From positions 92,730 through 156,729 of the forward strand of contig RHPI01000249.1 of the NCBI GenBank assembly GCA_009103225.1: DNA of 64,000 nt. Reading direction: 5' to 3'. Every line of letters begins with the position of its first letter. Within the stretch, counting starts at the first letter, position 1. A program made the position numbers and the translations under genes. The notes below the pieces were generated by a model. It worked only from the letters and a program-made list of their open reading frames with translations. It searched no databases and was not told where the DNA came from. The DNA is from Chlorokybus atmophyticus. Taxonomy: Eukaryota; Plantae; Mesostigma and Chlorokybus algae. Positions 8,108 to 22,447 of this stretch are shown piece by piece.

Positions 8108-11100
8108 CTAGGCATCCGAGTACACGCCTGTGCCTTCAGCAGCAAGTGGACTTTCATCGCCTTCTTCATCAGGGGCGGGTGTGGGTGTCTCTTCAGGTGC
8201 AGTAGGAGGAGGAGGCATGAGCTTGCCGCGGCCAGCTCCAAAGCCCTTCGTGCCGTCGGGACCCTTTGTTATTCGCGTGCTGGAGCCCTCGAACTTCATC
8301 TTCTCCCTCGGTGGCGGCTCGGGTGAAGGCGGGGCCTCTTTAGTGCGGCGGACTTTCCTCGCGAGCTTATCTGTGCTCTTGTTGGTCTGCACGGGGATGA
8401 ACTCCACCTCGTCGCCCTCGCGAAGGTGCACGCCATCCGTCACATCGCTGAACCGGCATAGGACCTGAGCCTTCGTGCCGTCCTCCAGCTCATACGCTAT
8501 TGTGCTGGTAGAGGCCTTCACCCCAACCACCGCGCCAGTGTACCGCAGCAGGTTCACGTTCGTGGCCATCCGTTGCTGGTTCCCGTCCACCGCCAGGTTG
8601 AACTCCACCTGCTCTCCCACCCTTGGGTTCAACCAACCATCCTCAAGGTCCGCGTTGCCGTACATGAGAGTTTCCTCTTGGCCATCTAGTGTGCATTGCA
8701 ACCGACCTGCCCAAGTAAAGACAGAACAAGAACATGTGTGTGTGCATGCGTACGATGTGGTCGCTCTTGTGAAACACCATTGCACACAAGATAAAACAAC
8801 ACAGCATCAGTAAACGGCAAGGGCCTTGCACGTGTGGCAGGTACCTGCGGTGCCTTGGGTGCTGCTCAAGCGATCCATGCACACGCCTTGATATCGTTCT
8901 TCTGAGACAGACACGTAGTCCGGCGGCCCGGCTGCCTTGCTGACTCGTATGGCCTTCAGGTTGCCTGTTTGCGTGTCCTTCACGACCGTGAAGTCCAGCC
9001 GGTCCCCAACCTCCAGTTCTGCGGATGCTCCGTCCTCCACTTCAGAGAAATGGAAGAAAACGTCGGTGCCGCGCAGTGCAGATCGGACAAACCCAAAGCT
9101 AGCTTTGAGAGACGTGATCGAGCCGGTCTCGATGGTGGCCTCCGAGTCTTCCACCTCCTTTGCAGGAACCATGATGGTTCCCTTTGGCAGCCGCCGGACC
9201 GGCACGGCAAGAGTCTTGCCTGACCGTGCATCTGGTCGTACACTGCACACCAATATGTCAGATCTCAGCAGAGACCCGCTTGTGTTTGCGTGACATGTGC
9301 ACATCAGCGTGTGCATGCTTACATGTGCACATGTGTGTTTGGAAGAAACATGTACATATGTCTCATGCTGTACCTGAACTCAACCTCGTCGCCAAGCTGC
9401 AGCTCATCGCCTCGCACGCCTTCGAGCGCGCTGAAGTGGAAGAACACCCGCGCCTGTCTGTCGGCAGACTGGATGAAACCGTACGTCTCCTTGAGAGACG
9501 TTACAAAGCCCTTCTCTGCAAGCGGCTCTTGTGTGGACGCTCCTCCTCCTTCCTGCACCTGCGTGTCTGCTTGTGCCGGAGCCGCTCGCGCGATCAGTGC
9601 CACATCTGTTGCATACGAGTCGCCTGTTCTCCTATCTGCGACCAACATGAACTCCACTTCATCGCCCACACCCAACCGCACATTCTGGTCCCGCACGTCC
9701 CCGCCATCAAATGTCACAGAGGCGGTAGCTGAGTCCGCGCTCGCATTGAAGTCGTCATTGGCAAGCCCTGGTGGAGCCAAAGTGTGATATGCAATGCGGC
9801 CACCATAAGCGTCCCGCCGTGATCGTTGGCCCCCGCGCAGCTCCCTTTCAATAAACCCGTGCAGGTGCTCGCCTTTTGGCTCCTCAACCTCAATTGTCCC
9901 TTTAGGCAGCACCTTGATGTGCTTTGCATTAGGCCGGCCGTTCTTGTTAAGAGGTTCGGTGACTTTGAACTCCACTTCATCGCCGGCTTGGATGACTTCG
10001 CTCAAGTCGGCCCTCCTCGCACCATGCTCGGCCTCCGGCATGTCAAGCACCTCGCTGACATGAAAGAACAGCTCCTCATTGCGGCTGACGCCCCGGATGA
10101 AGCCATACGAGTCCCGCACGGTCACGACAACCCCGTGCTCGGAGGGTATGCTCTCAAGCTCTTCTGCGGTCAGCGGCTGAGGCCGGTCGTAACCACCCTT
10201 CTCCCGTGTGACATAGCGTCCAGAGCCTCTGCCTCGTCCTCCCCTCCCCCACTGTCCGTCATCCATGCTGTTGCTGCTGTTGTTGTACTGTGAGTATTGT
10301 TGTTGTTGTTGCTGTTGAGGTCCTGACCCAGAGGGTTCGTCGCCAGTGTAGCGACTGTACCCTCTGCCCCGGCTTCGGCCATCTCCAGTAGGATAGTTGT
10401 AGCGTCCACGGCCTCGGCCTCGAACGGGAGATCTACCAGCAGATCAAGATCACTGGGTTACACTGGCAGTATCATACAATCAGACAACATGTGATGCATA
10501 CACTGTAAAACATGTTGTCAAAGCTCTCAGGTAATGCAGGTTGCACAACTCCACTGCTGAGCTTCGAAACCCTAACTTTTCAATTCAAACGTGGCCAAGA
10601 ACATGCAAGACCATATTGGGAGTAACCACAAGTAAACCACTTGCTTGCAATGCCGTGGAGCATGCTGCAAGCTGGTAGTAGCAAGCGACAAGCAGCTACA
10701 TGTGATGGAAAATTGGAGCAACGCTGAACATCTGTCGTCTGAAACGCTGTGATATGTGCTCTCCTTTGCGTGACTGCGTGTATGCTCAACTGGAAGGAAG
10801 CCCACGAGCGAACACACGTAACAACTCACCCGCCGTCGGTAGCATCATCGGATCTCCATCCGCCGGCGAGCTGCTGCTGCTGTTCCTGAGACAGACACGA
10901 ACAACCTGAGTAATTAGCAAGACTTGGAGCTAGGCAAAGCAGAAAACATGACCACAGCCTCAGCACAGTGGCCTCCGCCTATCCCTAGCAGGAAAGGCAA
11001 CCACCAGCCTAACCCTAAGCCACAGCTGTGACGTGATAGCAAAGCTTGATGTGTAGCAGGCACACGAGGTGAGGACAGCATACTTAAGAGCAAGTAGAAT

Positions 11101-14521: not shown

Positions 14522-16875
14522 ATGGAGGACGAGCAGGCGTTGGTGGAGGAGGCTGCCGCCATGGCTCGCCAGGCTGCAAAGCTGGCTACCAGGGCGGCGC
14601 AGCTCGCTGAGGAAGAAGAGGCGGCAGCGGAGGAGGAGGAGGGCCAGGACGACGAGCAGGCGGAAGACATGCCTCCTGGTATGTACTGCCTTTGCCCACT
14701 TCCATGCGACCAATCGCATGCGTCAAATGCTGAAGCTTTACGCTTGCGTCCTGCTCTGTGTGGCATGCTGCAGGAGGAGGCGCAGGAGGAGGTGGAGGAG
14801 CACGAGCTGTCAAAGACATAGCTATGCACGGCGGAGCTGTCGGCAACGGGCACAGCAAGCAGAAGCACTTGCCAGAAGAAGGAGGAGATCAGGATGGTCT
14901 TCATAGCCGGCAGCACAAGCGCCACAGGGCAGGCCTCTCCTCCAGCATTGTCGACACAGTTCGAGCGCAGTTCCCAGCATTCTCTAGACATCCTCAGCAC
15001 GTCTTCGCTGAAAACGCTGGAGGCTCTCAAGTAAAGATTAAACGTTGTGTCTGTCATTCGTGCTGCTGCATTGCTTGGTGCCCGCGTTGTATGACTGCCA
15101 ATTGCATGCATGCATCGGGCAGTGACTGGCCATCAATGTGACTGACTTGCTCAAAACTGTATGTTTCTCAGGTGCCGCGCTGTGTGAGTGAGGCTGTGAG
15201 CGAGTACTTTGAGAGCAAGTATGTGCAGGTGCTGCTTTGCACATATCTGCTACTGCTATCATATGCATTCCCAGGCTATGTGCGTGTGCATGCATGTGTG
15301 CGCTAGTGTGTGCTTTTATAACTGGTGCTTAATCAAGCTGCTCCATCACACAAACAGCATGCATGTTTGTGTGATGGAGTGCTTCAGCACGCATGCACTC
15401 ATTCTCATTCTCATGTGTTGTATTACCCTTACCTGAGTGCGGGTTGTCAGCTCGGCGCAGGGTACGCTCAAGCCAATGAGGCGGACGCGGTGATTCGGCT
15501 CGCGCACCACATGTGTGAGCTGTTTGTGAATGGTGTTGACACGGGGAAGTGCGCTCTTGGGGCATCCACAAGCGCAATGCTGTACTTTGTAGCGCAGGCG
15601 TACTCTACTGTATGGCAACCAGGAGACAAGGTACAAATGTTACACACACTACATACTCTTCAACACCAATCACATGCTCATGCGTGCGTGTTGTAAGGTT
15701 ATCATCGCAGAGTCTGCGCACGAGGCGAATGTGACGCCGTGGCTACACCTTGAGCGGCAAGGCGTGATTGATGTTGTGTGGTGGCGGCTGGACCCCTCTC
15801 ACTACACTTGCAAAATAGAGGACCTGGAGTCCCTCTTAGCCGTCTCCAAGGGCAAAGTCAAGCTCGTGTGCTTCCCGCACGTGTCCAACATACTTGGCGG
15901 CATCTGTGATGCTGAGAAGATTACAGACTTGTGCCACAGGTTGGTTGCTACAACAGTAGCTGCACATGCAATGTGGGTCACCGACCAACATGGAGTTGTT
16001 TGCAGGCACGGTGCGAAAGTGTGCGTGGATGGTGTGGCATATGCATCGCATCGAGCACCCGATGTAGCGGCTTCAAAAATTGATTGGTGAGTTGTTGTAG
16101 CTGCTTGCACACATGTGCGCGCGTGCTCGTCAAGTGCCTTAGTCCTCTGCTTGCATGCAGTGTCAATGCCATTGTAAATATCATCATCTTGTCATTAGGT
16201 ACGCCTATTCTTGTTACAAGGTCTATGGCCCGCACATGGCAGCGCTATACGGGAGTCACGAAGCTTGGGAGGAGTTGTCACAACACTCCAAGTCATTTCC
16301 AAACCATGGCTTTGTGAGCAACACTGACCCTGTGTACAAGATTGAACTTGGAGGGCCCAGCCATGAGGGTTGCGCCGCCATTGTTGCCCTCGGGACATAC
16401 TTGAACATCCTCAGGTTTGACCCAACACACGCACATTGCATTGACTTGTGGTAGTTGTATTGCTTAAAACATGATCCTGTGCAGAGGGTATATGGAGCCA
16501 CAGTCTTCTATTGATCGTGCGGGCATCGTAGAAGCGTTTGCACAAGTTACTGCCTTGGAGCTGCCTTTGCAGCAGCGTTTTATGGAGTACTTGACCAACA
16601 AGCCTGGAGTGCATGTGATCGGTCCAAGCGACAGTGACTCCGCCACGCGCGTGCCAACATTCTCTTTCGTGCACAACAAGTTGGCACCCGAGGAGATTGT
16701 CGCACACCTCCACAAGCGCAACATTGGTTGCCGTAGTGGCCACATGTATGCGATACGGGTTTGCGATGCGTTGGGGTTGACTCATAGTGGCGGTGTTGTC
16801 CGCTGCAGCTTCCTTCACTACAACACAATGAAGGACATTGATCGGGTCATTGAAGCACTTGATGACATTTTGTGA
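14522..16875 (+). CDS. Aminotransferase class V (fold-type I PLP) enzyme, cysteine-desulfurase-like but lacking the catalytic Cys, with acidic N-terminal extension
   Basis: Spliced product includes VRAQFPAF..VFAENAGGSQ, SAHEANVTPW, FPHVSNILG, VCVDGVAYASH, PLP-lysine motif YSCYKVYGPH, RSGHMYA and GVVRCSFLHYNT. The true start may lie upstream of 14522. Confidence 0.85.
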
Positions 16876-17899
16876 TTGAGCCATGCACTTGGGCTTTGCG
16901 TCCTTCTACGTGTACATTACCTACTTGTGAAGCTAGCTAGCTTCAAAATGTGAGCTCTTGCTTTAGCAGCACCTATAGCTACTGTTGCTGGATGTCTGGG
17001 CATGTTGTGATAAAAAACTCAGTTGGAATAGCTAGCTAGCTTTCAATCCAACCAGACTGCGCCTCTAATCGATCCCGATTAGCCTCTAATTTATTGTAAT
17101 CAGCCTTTAATGAATTTCGATTAGGGGGTAATCCATCCGGATTACCTTAATAGATTTCGATTACCTGCAGGACTCGATTGCACTGCGCTGGCATGGGGTG
17201 GGCTGACATCACGGTAACTGCACAATTGGGGGGGATATGCGGAGGTGCTGCAGGCTACCTCCGGCCTCGCCACCCATGCCGCCGCGGTGGCGATGGCCTG
17301 CGCCATTGTGCAATAACCCCAGAGGGCAATTGGATGGCTAGTGCACGTCTCCCAGCAGGTTTGGGTAGCACACAATTTGTTTGCGCAGTACCAGCAAAAG
17401 GGATGGGTGCCCTCCAGCTTGTGGACTTGTATGCATGCACAGTATGTATGCATCAATTGTCAACCAGCAGTATGTGAAATGCGCAAGTACGGGGAAGTTG
17501 TCCGGTTCTGTCATGTTATAGCAAGTGCTGGATCACAAGTAACCCTCATATAGGTCCTTGCAGCGCATTGCAGAAGGGTTAACCACATTGGTAAACAGGT
17601 GCAACTGATTCTGGATGGGGATAAGGATAACACTGCTGGCACTCACTCTCAACTGCTGCGACTGCGTTAATAAACTCACTGTGGGTTCAAGCTGGTTGCA
17701 AGTTTAATGGCCCGCACTTCTGCCAAGCCGACTCTACTTGTAAGCGTCTGTCTGATGGCCAGTGGGCGTGCACAGACAACTGGCGCCGATACTCTCAAAC
17801 CCATATTCGCATAACAACAATATCGTAGTCCTGTCAATGGCTTTGCCTAAGTAACAACTATAATATAAATTATAATATAGTTCAATACATCTACAGCTA

Positions 17900-19816
17900 T
17901 CAGCAATGTGCCTCCATCACAATCTGCATGTTGCGCGGCACTCTAGCGCCACCTGCACGTAACCGCCGGATGGTTTGTGACATGTTGGCAGGGTCTCCAG
18001 TGGAGGCAACGCGCACAATGTGCGGCAGAATATGCTGTGTGTAGTACAAGTTGTGATTGATGCTAGATGACGAGGCGTCAAGGCCATAAGCGTACGCCTG
18101 CTGAGCGCCCCCGCGAAAATGATGAGGCAAGTTATTACTCAATCCAAGAAGAGATACTGCACGCCGAGCGACGGGCAACGCAGCATCTATGATTTGTGTG
18201 TTGGGAGCCACCCTCGCAATTGCATCCTGTGCCACCAGCCGAATGAGTTGATGATCATCAACAGCCTCCGTACCATGTGACTCACCTGTACAAATCGATA
18301 GTGTGTGCAACCAAGAGCTATCACGTCCGCACCGTCTGCCAGCGGCTCCGCCAGCGACTCACGCAAAAGTGCCTCAAGCCTCGGCCCAGACAACTGTACC
18401 AGCAAGCACCTGGTTAACAATGTAGACTGCGCACACAGACACATGTGCCCACATGCACGAGCACCCGGCCCCATACGTATAAAGGTACGCACGTGCGCGG
18501 GCACACCACACGCACATGTTTGCACAGCACATTGCACACAAGGGCACGTGTGCACACGTGTGCAGGTGCGCATGCACTGCACATGCACACGTGTACACGT
18601 ACAATGGAAAGCAAATGCATGTGCATGTGCACACAACAAATCGTATCAATGTTGCGCACCTCGCCAGCTTCAACAAGGTCGGCAAGACCGGACATGGGCA
18701 AGACCCATACGCGGGTGCTTGGGCCGCTAACGGCGTCAGCGAGAGCGGCAAGGCGTGCGCCATCAACGGTGCGTTGCGTGGCCATTACAATGACCGACTG
18801 CGCTTGCGAGAGTGCGATGGCTGGCTTCAACGGTGGCTCCATCCCAACCACCGGCACGCCCACGGACCCGCGCAGCTCCTCGAGCGCCATTGATGATGCC
18901 GTGTTGCACGCCACAACCAACAGATCACAACCCTCCGCCTCTGTCAGTGCATGCAGTGAGATGTGTGTGTGGTGTGTGAGTGCAGACAAATGCGCGTGAG
19001 CGCAAGGGTGCACGCGCACAGGTGTCCGCACAATCAATGAGAACGTCCCAAGTGCAACGCAACACATTTGCGGAACTATGCATGTGAGCGATAAGCAATG
19101 TTCATCGCAACGATGATAATGTAGTGGCTAATGTACGCACCGAGCGTGCGGCCGATGTGCAGGACACGCGCAGCAATCACTTCGGGGCTCTTGTCTCCAT
19201 ACGGGAAGAAGGCGGTGTCGGCCACATAGCGCACACGCAGCGCTGGCTGTTTGCAGTGAAGAGACACAGAGACCACATGTTGTGACTTGCGAGACGACAC
19301 AAAACAGTGCATGGCAGCGAGCAGCAACATGCTAAAACGCACGCAACAAAAGTTGCATTGGGCTAGGTGTTATACTGCTTGATGACATAAATTGCACAAT
19401 GGTGTCCTTTTATCAGCTTGTCAACCCAAAAGAGACAACTAAAAGGACACCATTGTGCGATATTTGACTTCCAGATTGCACCTTCTCACCTGCAAGTCTT
19501 GCAATGCAGCCACAACAGATAGCCCGCCGACGCCGGAGTCAAACACACCAACGGTGGCGTTCCTGTGCAGACGGCGCTCGGCGCCCTCATCCGATCTCCC
19601 TGACGTGGAGGTCAACGTGGACGACGCGGCTGAGTAGCAGGATGCTGCGGCGGCATCATGCTGCTGCTGACACCACCAGCTCTCCAGACTCCTCCTCCTC
19701 CTCCTGCCCCTGCCCCTCTTCCGACTACTACTAGAGTGTCCAGCCGCATCAACACGTACCCCATCGACCCTAGAGCCACAACCCCATCCCACCCCCACCC
19801 CTGCCATCGCCGCCAT
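17900..19816 (-). CDS. murI: Glutamate racemase (MurI) with N-terminal transit-peptide-like extension, multi-exon
   Basis: Motifs VGVFDSGVGGLSV, YVADTAFFPYGDKS, VACNTAS (catalytic Cys 1), VGMEPPLKPA, VMATQRTV and LGCTHY (catalytic Cys 2). GT-AG introns separate the motifs. Confidence 0.92.
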
Positions 19817-20121
19817 TGCCGCCGTTTACCGCTTGCACTGACATACCTCGTCTTAACACTTGCATTCAGTGCCTTAACGATTGATGAAGGCACAATGATT
19901 ACGGGTCTAGGGTTGTACTAGGCTAGTGACGTAGGTTGACGTCACATAACGTACGCTACTCATGTCACAGCCATTCGGTGTCTTAGCGGCTGCGTCAAAG
20001 CACTGAATCAACGTGCAGCACTGTGTTCAGCGTCTTAACGCAGTGACCCCAACTCTCGCCGCCGCCGCCGCCGCCGCCGCTGTGTGTGGGTCGTCCTGGT
20101 CCTTACTGCCGGGAGCAAGCG
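19817..20121. promoter_or_regulatory. Short divergent (bidirectional) promoter between murI and the BCAT gene, with paired TGACGT motifs
   Basis: Head-to-head start codons about 305 bp apart. TGACGTA at 19927-19933 and palindromic TGACGTCA at 19937-19944. Confidence 0.6.
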
Positions 20122-22447
20122 ATGTCGAGCGCTGCGACGACGTCCCAGGCGACGTCCTGTCGGCATGCTGCGTGGGGAGGAGCAGGCGAAGCTGCTGGTC
20201 GCCGTCCCAGCCTGCGGAGCAGCAGCAAGCACAGTGCGGATGGCCTGGTGCTGCTGCAGCAGCAGCCTCTGAGAGCGCTCCGCCAGGTCTGAGCTGGTTT
20301 ATGTCGCCATTGTTAGCTGCAAGTGCATATCAACATGAGACACATGCTGCGTGATGGAGCATTGCTTGACGTTGAGTTGTGTGTATGTGTGCGTGGGTCG
20401 ACAGCGATCGTCTCGCAGCGGTGCGAGGGCTGAGGCAGCTGCTATCAATGTCGCCGCAGTGGAGAGCAAGCCAGCTGCTGGGTAGGCTGTCGCTGGACTG
20501 TCGAACGATGATATTGGCATCTTGGGGACAGGGCATGCACGTTGCATTGCTGATTCGTTTCTTTCCCCAACAGCAAGAAGAAGGCGTCCGACGTTGATTG
20601 GGACAACATTGGTTTCGGCCTGGTGCCGCCAGATTACATGTTCGTTGGTCAATGCGAGTTGGGCGGGGACTGGTCTGGGCAGCTGCAACCGTATGGCAAT
20701 ATTTCAATCAGCCCTTCCGCAGGCGTCTTGAATTATGGACAGGTAATTCCTAGACAGTTCTCCCAGTTCTGCCTCATCAGAATGTGTTCATGCCGGGCAT
20801 TACACCAGGGCGTGGTTTGGTGAGGAAGTGATTTGTAAGCAGACCTGGTTCTGCTATATAGCGATAAACACTGACAGTCCATCTGGCGTTGTCTCCCTCT
20901 TGACATGCTTAGCCCAGTAGTAGTTGCTCCATCATGACCCTGCGTAATTTACACAGGGCGTGTTTGAAGGCCTCAAGTCGTATCGCACTGCTGACGGGCG
21001 TGTGGTCACATTCCGGCCAACACAGAATGCCCGCCGCATGCAATATGGCGCTAAGCGCATGAGCATGCCTCCTCCTCCTGAGGACTTTTTCGTCGATGCT
21101 GTCCTTCGCACCATCTCCGCCAACAGAGATTGGGTATGTGATTGCTCTTTGCACCTATTCCATGCTTTGCATGCAGACGGCGCGCTTAACATCATGTTTG
21201 CAGATCCCACCGTATGGGAAGGGATCCCTGTATGTGAGGCCACTGCTGATTGGGTCAGGTGCTGTCCTTGGTCTCGCGCCAGCTCCCAGCTACACGTTGC
21301 TTGTGTTTGCATCTCCCGTTGGTCCGTACTTCAAGGTGGGGATGTTGTATTCTTGCATGCGGTGGATTGCATGTAGTGTGTGAGAGGACTGTTTAACTGT
21401 TTAACTGCAATAAATGTGTGTTGCAACCTTCAACAATTGGTCTTCTATTGCAGGGTGGGCAACAAACTCCAATCAGCCTACAGGTCTGCAACGACTACCA
21501 CCGTGCTGCCGCGAATGGCCAAGGTGATGTCAAGACAATGGGGAACTATGCCCAGGTACAGTCGCTTGTCTTGCAAGCGGTTGAATATGCATGTTGACTT
21601 GTTTCCTCAAGCTTGAAGGTGTCATTGTTGGTCTGATGTTTGACGGATTTGAGCACACATCAAAGCTGCATTTCCTGCCGTGACCAGCATGTGCTCGGCA
21701 ACTCATGTGCACCCATGTACAGGTGTTGGCCATCCAGCAAAAGGCCAAGGCAGCTGGATTTGCAGATGTGCTTTACTTGGATGACAAGGAAAACAAGTAT
21801 CTGGAGGAGGTGTCATCTTGCAACATTTTTGTTGTGAAGGTGAGGCTGGCTCCCTCAGCCCTAATCCCTTCATGTCCATTTTCTGAAGCAACATCTTGAT
21901 GCCTTGCGGACGCAGGGCAAGAGGCTAGCGACTCCATGTCTAGGTACCATCCTAGATGGTATTACAAGGAGGAGTATCCTCCAACTTGCAAGCGATCTTG
22001 GTTACGAGGTGTGTTGATGACTAGCAGTGATGTCTGGTTCTCAATCCCATGTGTTGTGCTGAAGTCTGTGCCCCTGCAGGCTGTGGAGGAGAAAGTGACT
22101 GTTGACGACCTCTTTGATGCTGAGGAGGTGTTCTGCACGGGCACTGCTGTGGTTGTGTCGCCGGTTGGCAGCGTTACGTATGGCGAACGCAGGTTGGTGT
22201 GCATCCTGACCATTGTGCACGCATTGTCTGCATCACTCCACGTGGTGCTGGTTGGTTGAGCAATCGCCAGCAGTTTTGTGATGACAATGAGATGTGTTTG
22301 TTCAATAGGGCGGTTTATCACAACGGTGAGGTGGGGCCAGTGGCGGCGCAACTCTACAAGGCGCTAACAGATCTGCAGTTTGGCCGCACCAAGGACACCT
22401 ACAATTGGCTGATGGAAGTCCCTGAAGGCTACCATAACAGGCAGTAG
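20122..22447 (+). CDS. BCAT: Branched-chain amino acid aminotransferase (class IV PLP, plant/IlvE type) with N-terminal extension
   Basis: Motifs [16 protein letters not shown]|[52 protein letters not shown] and [15 protein letters not shown]. Stop at 22445-22447. Confidence 0.93.

Follow-up and report, generated by a model that had tools for sequence, protein, structure and literature searches.

A spliced MurI-type glutamate racemase gene in the streptophyte alga Chlorokybus atmophyticus, a candidate source of D-glutamate for plastid peptidoglycan

Introduction

MurD needs D-glutamate (D-Glu) for peptidoglycan synthesis, and where algae and mosses obtain it for the peptidoglycan layer of their chloroplasts is a recognized gap in knowledge. 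All streptophyte algae were reported to encode ten core peptidoglycan enzymes (Li 2020, PMC7455551). Glutamate racemase (MurI), however, was described as not obvious in most green plants, being present in Klebsormidium nitens and absent from Mesotaenium and moss, and a D-amino-acid aminotransferase or DapF was proposed as its substitute in moss (Dowson 2022, PMC9434261). Here a MurI gene is described from Chlorokybus atmophyticus, located at 17900..19816 on the minus strand of a 64,000-nucleotide (nt) stretch of genomic DNA (contig RHPI01000249.1, positions 92,730 to 156,729, assembly GCA_009103225.1; hereafter the window). The gene was found to be spliced and expressed, and its product is predicted to be a bona fide glutamate racemase.

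The distribution reported by Dowson 2022 (PMC9434261) bears out the initial annotation of this DNA, in which MurI was called patchy in eukaryotes and a D-amino-acid transaminase was mentioned as the proposal for moss. Only Klebsormidium and one Cyanophora candidate are named as MurI in that paper. In the supplementary table of the Cyanophora genome paper itself, both candidates are labelled "MurI ?" and described as eukaryote-specific with eukaryote-type best matches, and given these labels and matches the Cyanophora "MurI" was not counted as MurI here. In full-text searches of the literature no discussion was found of MurI in Chlorokybus, Mesostigma, Nephroselmis or pavlovophytes, or of an affinity to Chloroflexota; what was recovered is a single line on the K. 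nitens protein (PMC9434261).

Gene Structure and Expression

The MurI coding sequence (CDS) runs on the minus strand from the ATG at 19816-19814 to the TGA at 17902-17900 and comprises five exons with a total of 1149 nt, encoding 382 amino acids (aa). The model was built by hand on the reverse strand and checked by script. The initial annotation had placed the gene at 17900-19816 with several GT-AG introns; these bounds coincide exactly with the stop and start codons of the CDS, and the introns number four, all of them GT..AG (243, 200, 266, and 59 nt). The translation is identical to EukProt protein jgi/Chlat1/7336/Chrsp59S06971 (P0001), retrieved by a word search with exon 3, and the gene is therefore Chlorokybus nuclear DNA which was already publicly annotated.

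The gene is expressed and spliced. Logan contigs from four runs of one and the same recorded organism were aligned to positions 17500-20200; that these runs are RNA is a guess, and intron-less contigs are what complementary DNA gives. All five exons are covered both by a 1291-nt contig (X1) and by a 1256-nt contig (X3), which omit exactly 18227-18285, 18394-18659, 18941-19140, and 19247-19489. X1 and X3 belong to one study, X3 representing a diverged strain of about 93% identity with many substitutions. Contig data from a separate study (X2) are identical in sequence to the window, confirm the removal of intron 4, and have a loose end at 18660 which continues into the first bases of exon 4.

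All parts of the gene lie on the minus strand. Exon 1 (19490..19816, residues 1-109) encodes an N-terminal extension of 86 aa (19559..19816) and the substrate-binding motif FDSGVGG, with FDSG at 19543-19532. It is followed by intron 1 (19247..19489, phase 0), exon 2 (19141..19246, 106 nt), and intron 2 (18941..19140, phase 1), all seen in both the gene model and the contigs. Exon 3 (18660..18940, 281 nt) carries the motif ACNTAS (18911-18894, with the Cys156 codon at 18908-18906) as well as GMEPPLKPA, a signature of the Dehalococcoidia-type clade discussed below. Intron 3 (18394..18659, phase 0), likewise supported by model and contigs, separates it from exon 4 (18286..18393, 108 nt), which contains GCTHY (18312-18298, with the Cys267 codon at 18309-18307). 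Intron 4 (18227..18285, phase 0) is skipped in the X1, X2, and X3 contigs. Exon 5 (17900..18226, 327 nt including the stop codon) encodes, as judged from contigs, alignment and model confidence, a loop insertion relative to bacterial MurI (about 18145-18020) and a C-terminal region of the form TGDP...RLRxxGAxxP, which the Dehalococcoidia-type clade has as well. The 3' untranslated region covers 17748..17899 as far as the transcript contigs extend, their pieces beginning at 17748-17758.

The loop region of roughly 40 residues suggested that exon 5 might conceal an in-frame intron. This was ruled out, since exon 5 is uninterrupted in the transcript contigs from 17748 to 18225, and the extra loop residues are thus coding and not an overlooked intron.

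Protein Family and Active Site

The protein was found to match the NCBIfam equivalog model for glutamate racemase (TIGR00067, glut_race) at 171.6 bits, the cut-off being 146.65, over residues 89-306 and model positions 1-220 of 251, a match which on sequence grounds is far beyond chance. The models for aspartate racemase and cysteate racemase scored far under their own cut-offs. Together with the intron-less contigs, this score upholds the earlier reading of the gene as a spliced eukaryotic glutamate racemase. A match to Pfam PF01177 was found at residues 102-290, and all 23 of the 23 matches to sequences of the Protein Data Bank (PDB) were glutamate racemases.

Both catalytic cysteines, which had been described as intact in ACNTAS and GCTHY, were located at Cys156 (motif at residues 155-160) and Cys267 (266-270), and FDSG begins at residue 92. 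Cys156 and Cys267 are invariant in an alignment of 45 sequences, as are D93, S94, N157, E235, T268, and H269; T158 is present in the protein and stands outside the listed invariant columns. D93, S94, N157, T158, E235, T268, and H269 align with the equivalent residues of the structures 2JFN, 2JFU, and 1B73.

An AlphaFold2 model computed with the 45-sequence alignment as input has a core with predicted local distance difference test (pLDDT) values >90 and the two-domain alpha/beta fold of MurI. A Foldseek comparison with the PDB gave MurI/RacE structures for all of the best 48 matches, with E-values down to 5e-20 and a target-normalized TM-score of about 0.82-0.85. The low-confidence regions are residues 1-86 and about 301-340, predicted to be disordered or loop, the latter being the loop region encoded by exon 5 (pLDDT about 50-74), which is about 28 residues longer than in the bacterial proteins. 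By sequence and by predicted fold, the protein has every feature by which a MurI is recognized. The gene product is probably a catalytically competent, cofactor-independent glutamate racemase (EC 5.1.1.3), which would interconvert L- and D-glutamate by means of Cys156 and Cys267.

Age of the Gene

The seven exons of the Klebsormidium locus (L083) were mapped and the intron sites compared in the protein alignment. All four Chlorokybus introns match four of the six Klebsormidium introns in both alignment column and phase (0, 1, 0, 0). With roughly 840 possible codon-phase sites such a coincidence is not due to chance, and the gene was therefore already present with introns in the common ancestor of Chlorokybus and Klebsormidium, and represents neither contamination nor a gene imported recently. 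As judged from these intron sites, the MurI gene is ancestral to streptophytes. The G+C content at third codon positions (GC3) of the MurI CDS is 0.63, compared with 0.54-0.67 for the exons of a neighboring aminotransferase gene; bacterial contigs have a G+C content of 69-75%.

Eukaryotic Relatives

For the word search and the exhaustive representative search, the best 120 or 150 matches were listed. In the full-length word search, the best match was Mesostigma viride Mv07897, with 50% identity and 279 bits. Among the matches listed it was followed by bacterial MurI proteins of 267-300 aa, every named one of which came from a metagenome-assembled genome (MAG) of Chloroflexi/Dehalococcoidia. 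A length-restricted search was made with a 575-aa MurI fusion as query in order to leave out the ordinary bacterial lengths; among the matches listed, the only EukProt entries were those of Chlorokybus and Mesostigma, and two Logan proteins (P0169 and P0170) were also found. Other matches of this search were MurI proteins joined to a macro domain (PF01661), a glutamine amidotransferase-like domain (PF07722/PF00117), or a PfkB kinase (PF00294).

As any statement on distribution rests on the absence of relatives, the exhaustive representative search was carried out and the clusters nearest to the eukaryotes were looked up. K. nitens GAQ85716.1, to which Dowson et al. 2022 had referred, was recovered in this way (P0303), and the cluster look-up further identified a sequence of the prasinophyte Nephroselmis pyriformis (MMETSP0034; P0307). 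A pavlovophyte-like protein (P0304), 81% identical to that of Diacronema, was present on many metagenome contigs. The 90% cluster of P0169 includes the EukProt protein P004738 of Diacronema (Pavlova) lutheri. P0169 lies on a 6.2 kb contig (Logan SRR5826620) with intronless genes for a GMPPB-like protein, MurI, and a CD36-family protein, MurI standing between the other two (L081:1402-2412). The contig is eukaryotic and not bacterial contamination, because of these GMPPB-like and CD36 neighbors. The relatives beyond Klebsormidium, the shared introns, the probably non-cyanobacterial affinity and the haptophyte copies are new here and make a modest evolutionary point.

Bacterial Affinity and Phylogeny

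One genome per species in GTDB was scanned with the narrow patterns VGMEPP[LV]KP and DSGVGGL[ST]V[VA]. Among the matches listed, the top seven loci were all from Chloroflexota or unlabelled MAGs (45-56% identity), below which there was a clear fall to 45% identity or less with many phyla represented. No cyanobacterium was present among the matches listed in the word searches or in this narrow-pattern scan, and no cyanobacterial MurI was found in a plasmid collection. To our knowledge, cyanobacterial MurI proteins do not carry the GMEPPLKPA signature.

A first tree of 68 rows was calculated with IQ-TREE under LG+C20+F+G4 with posterior mean site frequencies (PMSF). In it, Chlorokybus grouped with Mesostigma (96/83) and two pavlovophyte-like sequences with each other (100/100), all within a clade of 45 rows (100/97) whose named bacteria are all Chloroflexota (Dehalococcoidia). 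A second tree, to which Klebsormidium, Nephroselmis and further representatives were added, recovered Chlorokybus, Mesostigma and Klebsormidium together (92/83), Nephroselmis with the pavlovophytes (87/79), the seven eukaryotes as one clade (70/81), and the enclosing Dehalococcoidia-type clade (93/90). Among the bacterial sequences sampled in these trees, this grouping points to ancient horizontal transfer, rather than descent from the cyanobacterial plastid ancestor, as the probable origin of the gene, the donor and the direction of transfer being inferred. Horizontal transfer of Asp/Glu racemases into eukaryotes has been documented in general (PMC5169069). Fusions of Dehalococcoidia-type MurI to orotidine-5'-phosphate decarboxylase (PF00215) were also seen in metagenomic proteins (the P0153, P0172, P0195 group).

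N-terminal Extension

The initial annotation had noted an N-terminal extension of ~85 aa rich in Ser, Arg, and Ala, and the extension was indeed found to measure 86 aa, and to be basic (net charge +8). Ser and Arg make up 16% of it each, Ala 14%, and Gly 13%, and it includes the run RKRGRGRRRRR. It is predicted to be disordered (pLDDT 37-58). Bacterial homologs begin ~5 residues ahead of FDSG and have no such extension, the Chlorokybus protein having 86 extra residues. On composition, the extension fits an organellar presequence and is a candidate targeting peptide, the organelle not being specified by composition.

An extension of 64 residues, rich in Ala, Pro, and Arg, is present in the Nephroselmis fragment. 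In K. nitens, no stop codon interrupts the MurI frame over the 88 codons that precede the annotated ATG, and this stretch holds earlier in-frame ATGs (L083:3737-4000, DF237199.1), from one of which the protein would be lengthened by about 60 residues. The K. nitens model may be 5'-short and lack its extension, because such an in-frame upstream ATG exists. Between Chlorokybus strains the extension diverges fast (19620-19760, minus strand), with only few substitutions in the core of the gene. The match of the X3 contig to the extension ends at 19705, and one X1 contig has a 118-nt skip (19669-19788).

Proposed Role and Alternatives

The best overall explanation, which is considered probable, is that of a native, expressed MurI of ancient horizontal origin which would provide D-Glu for plastid peptidoglycan, with the extension acting as a transit peptide. 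The 86-aa extension would direct the protein to the plastid, where MurI would supply D-Glu to MurD for a peptidoglycan layer thought to be kept by early-diverging green algae. That the enzyme serves plastid peptidoglycan is plausible, since all streptophyte algae are said to encode the core pathway (PMC7455551). It is also fairly probable that early-diverging green algae in general make D-Glu with MurI for this purpose, and that the gene was lost toward the Zygnematophyceae and land plants. A more detailed history can be put forward only tentatively, and is rather doubtful as a whole: a Chloroflexota-type MurI, and not the cyanobacterial one, would have been recruited for plastid peptidoglycan by the ancestor common to all green algae, and early streptophytes and some prasinophytes would have inherited it vertically together with its introns. 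Its loss before the Zygnematophyceae and land plants would have left these in need of another source of D-Glu, and it would also have passed to pavlovophytes, in which it would work outside peptidoglycan.

A number of points weigh against the plastid reading and against the origin proposed with it. That Chlorokybus has MurA-G, MraY, Ddl, and PBP is taken from one sentence of PMC7455551. The run RKRGRGRRRRR is also compatible with a mitochondrial or a nuclear signal, and the annotated proteins of Mesostigma and Klebsormidium and the EukProt protein of Diacronema have just 4-20 residues ahead of the motif. Pavlovophyte haptophytes, for which we know of no plastid peptidoglycan, have a MurI of the same clade, and the enzyme need therefore not be tied to peptidoglycan. 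As to origin, a tree with the 41 bacterial members held together was not rejected by the approximately unbiased test (p = 0.2), so that the eukaryotes may form the sister group of the sampled Dehalococcoidia-type sequences instead of branching among them. Both trees contain no cyanobacterial MurI sequence. The initial annotation had allowed either an endosymbiotic or a horizontal origin; the horizontal part is favored by the Dehalococcoidia-type grouping, and the endosymbiotic part is less favored on trees of this composition.

Among the alternatives, the one which survives best, and which is nevertheless judged unlikely, is that MurI acts mainly in the D-to-L direction, in salvage or catabolism of D-Glu from peptidoglycan fragments (released by turnover of the alga's own plastid wall or by soil or biofilm bacteria), in the cytosol or another compartment. 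It retains some weight because the MurI reaction is freely reversible, because pavlovophytes keep the same clade next to eukaryotic neighbor genes with peptidoglycan synthesis not known there, and because the gene models of several relatives lack a targeting extension. It has also been proposed that eukaryotic racemases derived from horizontal transfer serve to draw nitrogen from D-amino acids (PMC5169069). However, haptophytes aside, the known hosts are green lineages which were reported to keep peptidoglycan synthesis (PMC7455551, PMC4815162). The N-terminal extensions of Chlorokybus and Nephroselmis also speak against salvage. Furthermore, MurD needs a source of D-Glu, and none other is established.

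Less probable still is that the D-Glu is made for another product or compartment, for example in the mitochondrion, or for a metabolite unrelated to peptidoglycan. An extension rich in Arg could be a mitochondrial presequence and the haptophyte occurrence would fit, but we know of no D-Glu-containing product besides peptidoglycan in green algae. Finally, bacterial contamination, an assembly artifact, or a decaying, non-functional recent transfer, for which only the nearest bacterial relatives at about 50-56% identity could be adduced, is ruled out for practical purposes by four spliceosomal introns removed in RNA, intron sites in common with Klebsormidium, and host-like base composition (GC3), and is further opposed by the intact reading frame and active site and by the flanking genes, for a branched-chain aminotransferase and a cysteine-desulfurase-like protein, which are eukaryotic and intron-bearing.

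With D-Glu supply for plastid peptidoglycan as the preferred role, a bona fide MurI that is present in a prasinophyte and, among the streptophyte algae sampled, in the three deepest lineages offers a concrete candidate enzyme for the missing D-Glu source. It also provides a dated loss to be explained, as none was reported in Mesotaenium or moss (Dowson 2022), and a case in which it can be tested whether a probably non-cyanobacterial gene works in a plastid pathway inherited from cyanobacteria.

Neighboring Genes

MurI stands head to head with a multi-exon gene for a type-II branched-chain aminotransferase (BCAT) on the plus strand (20092-22447). Transcript contigs of BCAT start near 20092, which leaves about 280 bp to the MurI ATG, and a shared bidirectional promoter is suggested by this head-to-head layout and narrow gap. 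The BCAT contigs have depth figures above those of MurI, which is a poor measure. This gene, a class-IV aminotransferase, was considered as a D-amino-acid transaminase partner of MurI and ruled out, its exons matching the BCAT type II models TIGR01123 and NF009897.

Downstream of MurI, an exon of a class-V aminotransferase or cysteine-desulfurase-like gene was found on the plus strand at 15593-16087 (PF00266; TIGR01976-like). MurI, BCAT and this gene look like common housekeeping enzymes, and nothing was seen to suggest that they form a functional cluster. Long open stretches with several cold-shock domains (PF00313, CSDE1-type) at 8111-10443 on the minus strand probably belong to a gene for an RNA-binding protein with multiple such domains.

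Comparison with Known Glutamate Racemases

The enzymes of Escherichia coli (2JFN), Bacillus subtilis (1ZUW), and Aquifex (1B73) have in common with Chlorokybus MurI the fold, the Cys pair, and the Asp, Ser, Asn, Thr, Glu, and His residues, but are just 24-30% identical to it. The E. coli enzyme requires the activator UDP-MurNAc-L-Ala. The Dehalococcoidia/Chloroflexota proteins (L001-L006, P0123, P0124) are much closer, with 45-56% identity, and share VGMEPPLKPA and the C-terminal region RLRxAGAxLPP. However, they are only 267-290 aa in length, lack the N-terminal extension, the loop insertion and the introns, and are encoded in DNA of 69-75% G+C.

The Diacronema lutheri protein (EP00963 P004738 / P0169) is 41% identical and falls in the same weakly supported eukaryotic clade, but its gene is intronless and lies on a gene-dense contig. 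The plastid of Diacronema is secondary and red-derived, and we know of no report of plastid peptidoglycan in pavlovophyte haptophytes. Mesostigma Mv07897 (EukProt EP00899 P011984) is sister to the Chlorokybus protein and has an insertion at the same loop, differing in a model with about 20 residues ahead of FDSG and in a longer C-terminal tail. The K. nitens protein GAQ85716.1 (KFL_002500140) is 51% identical and belongs to the same clade; its gene has two extra introns, an annotated start 4 residues ahead of WDSG, and a shorter loop insertion, and has all four introns of the Chlorokybus gene in common with it.

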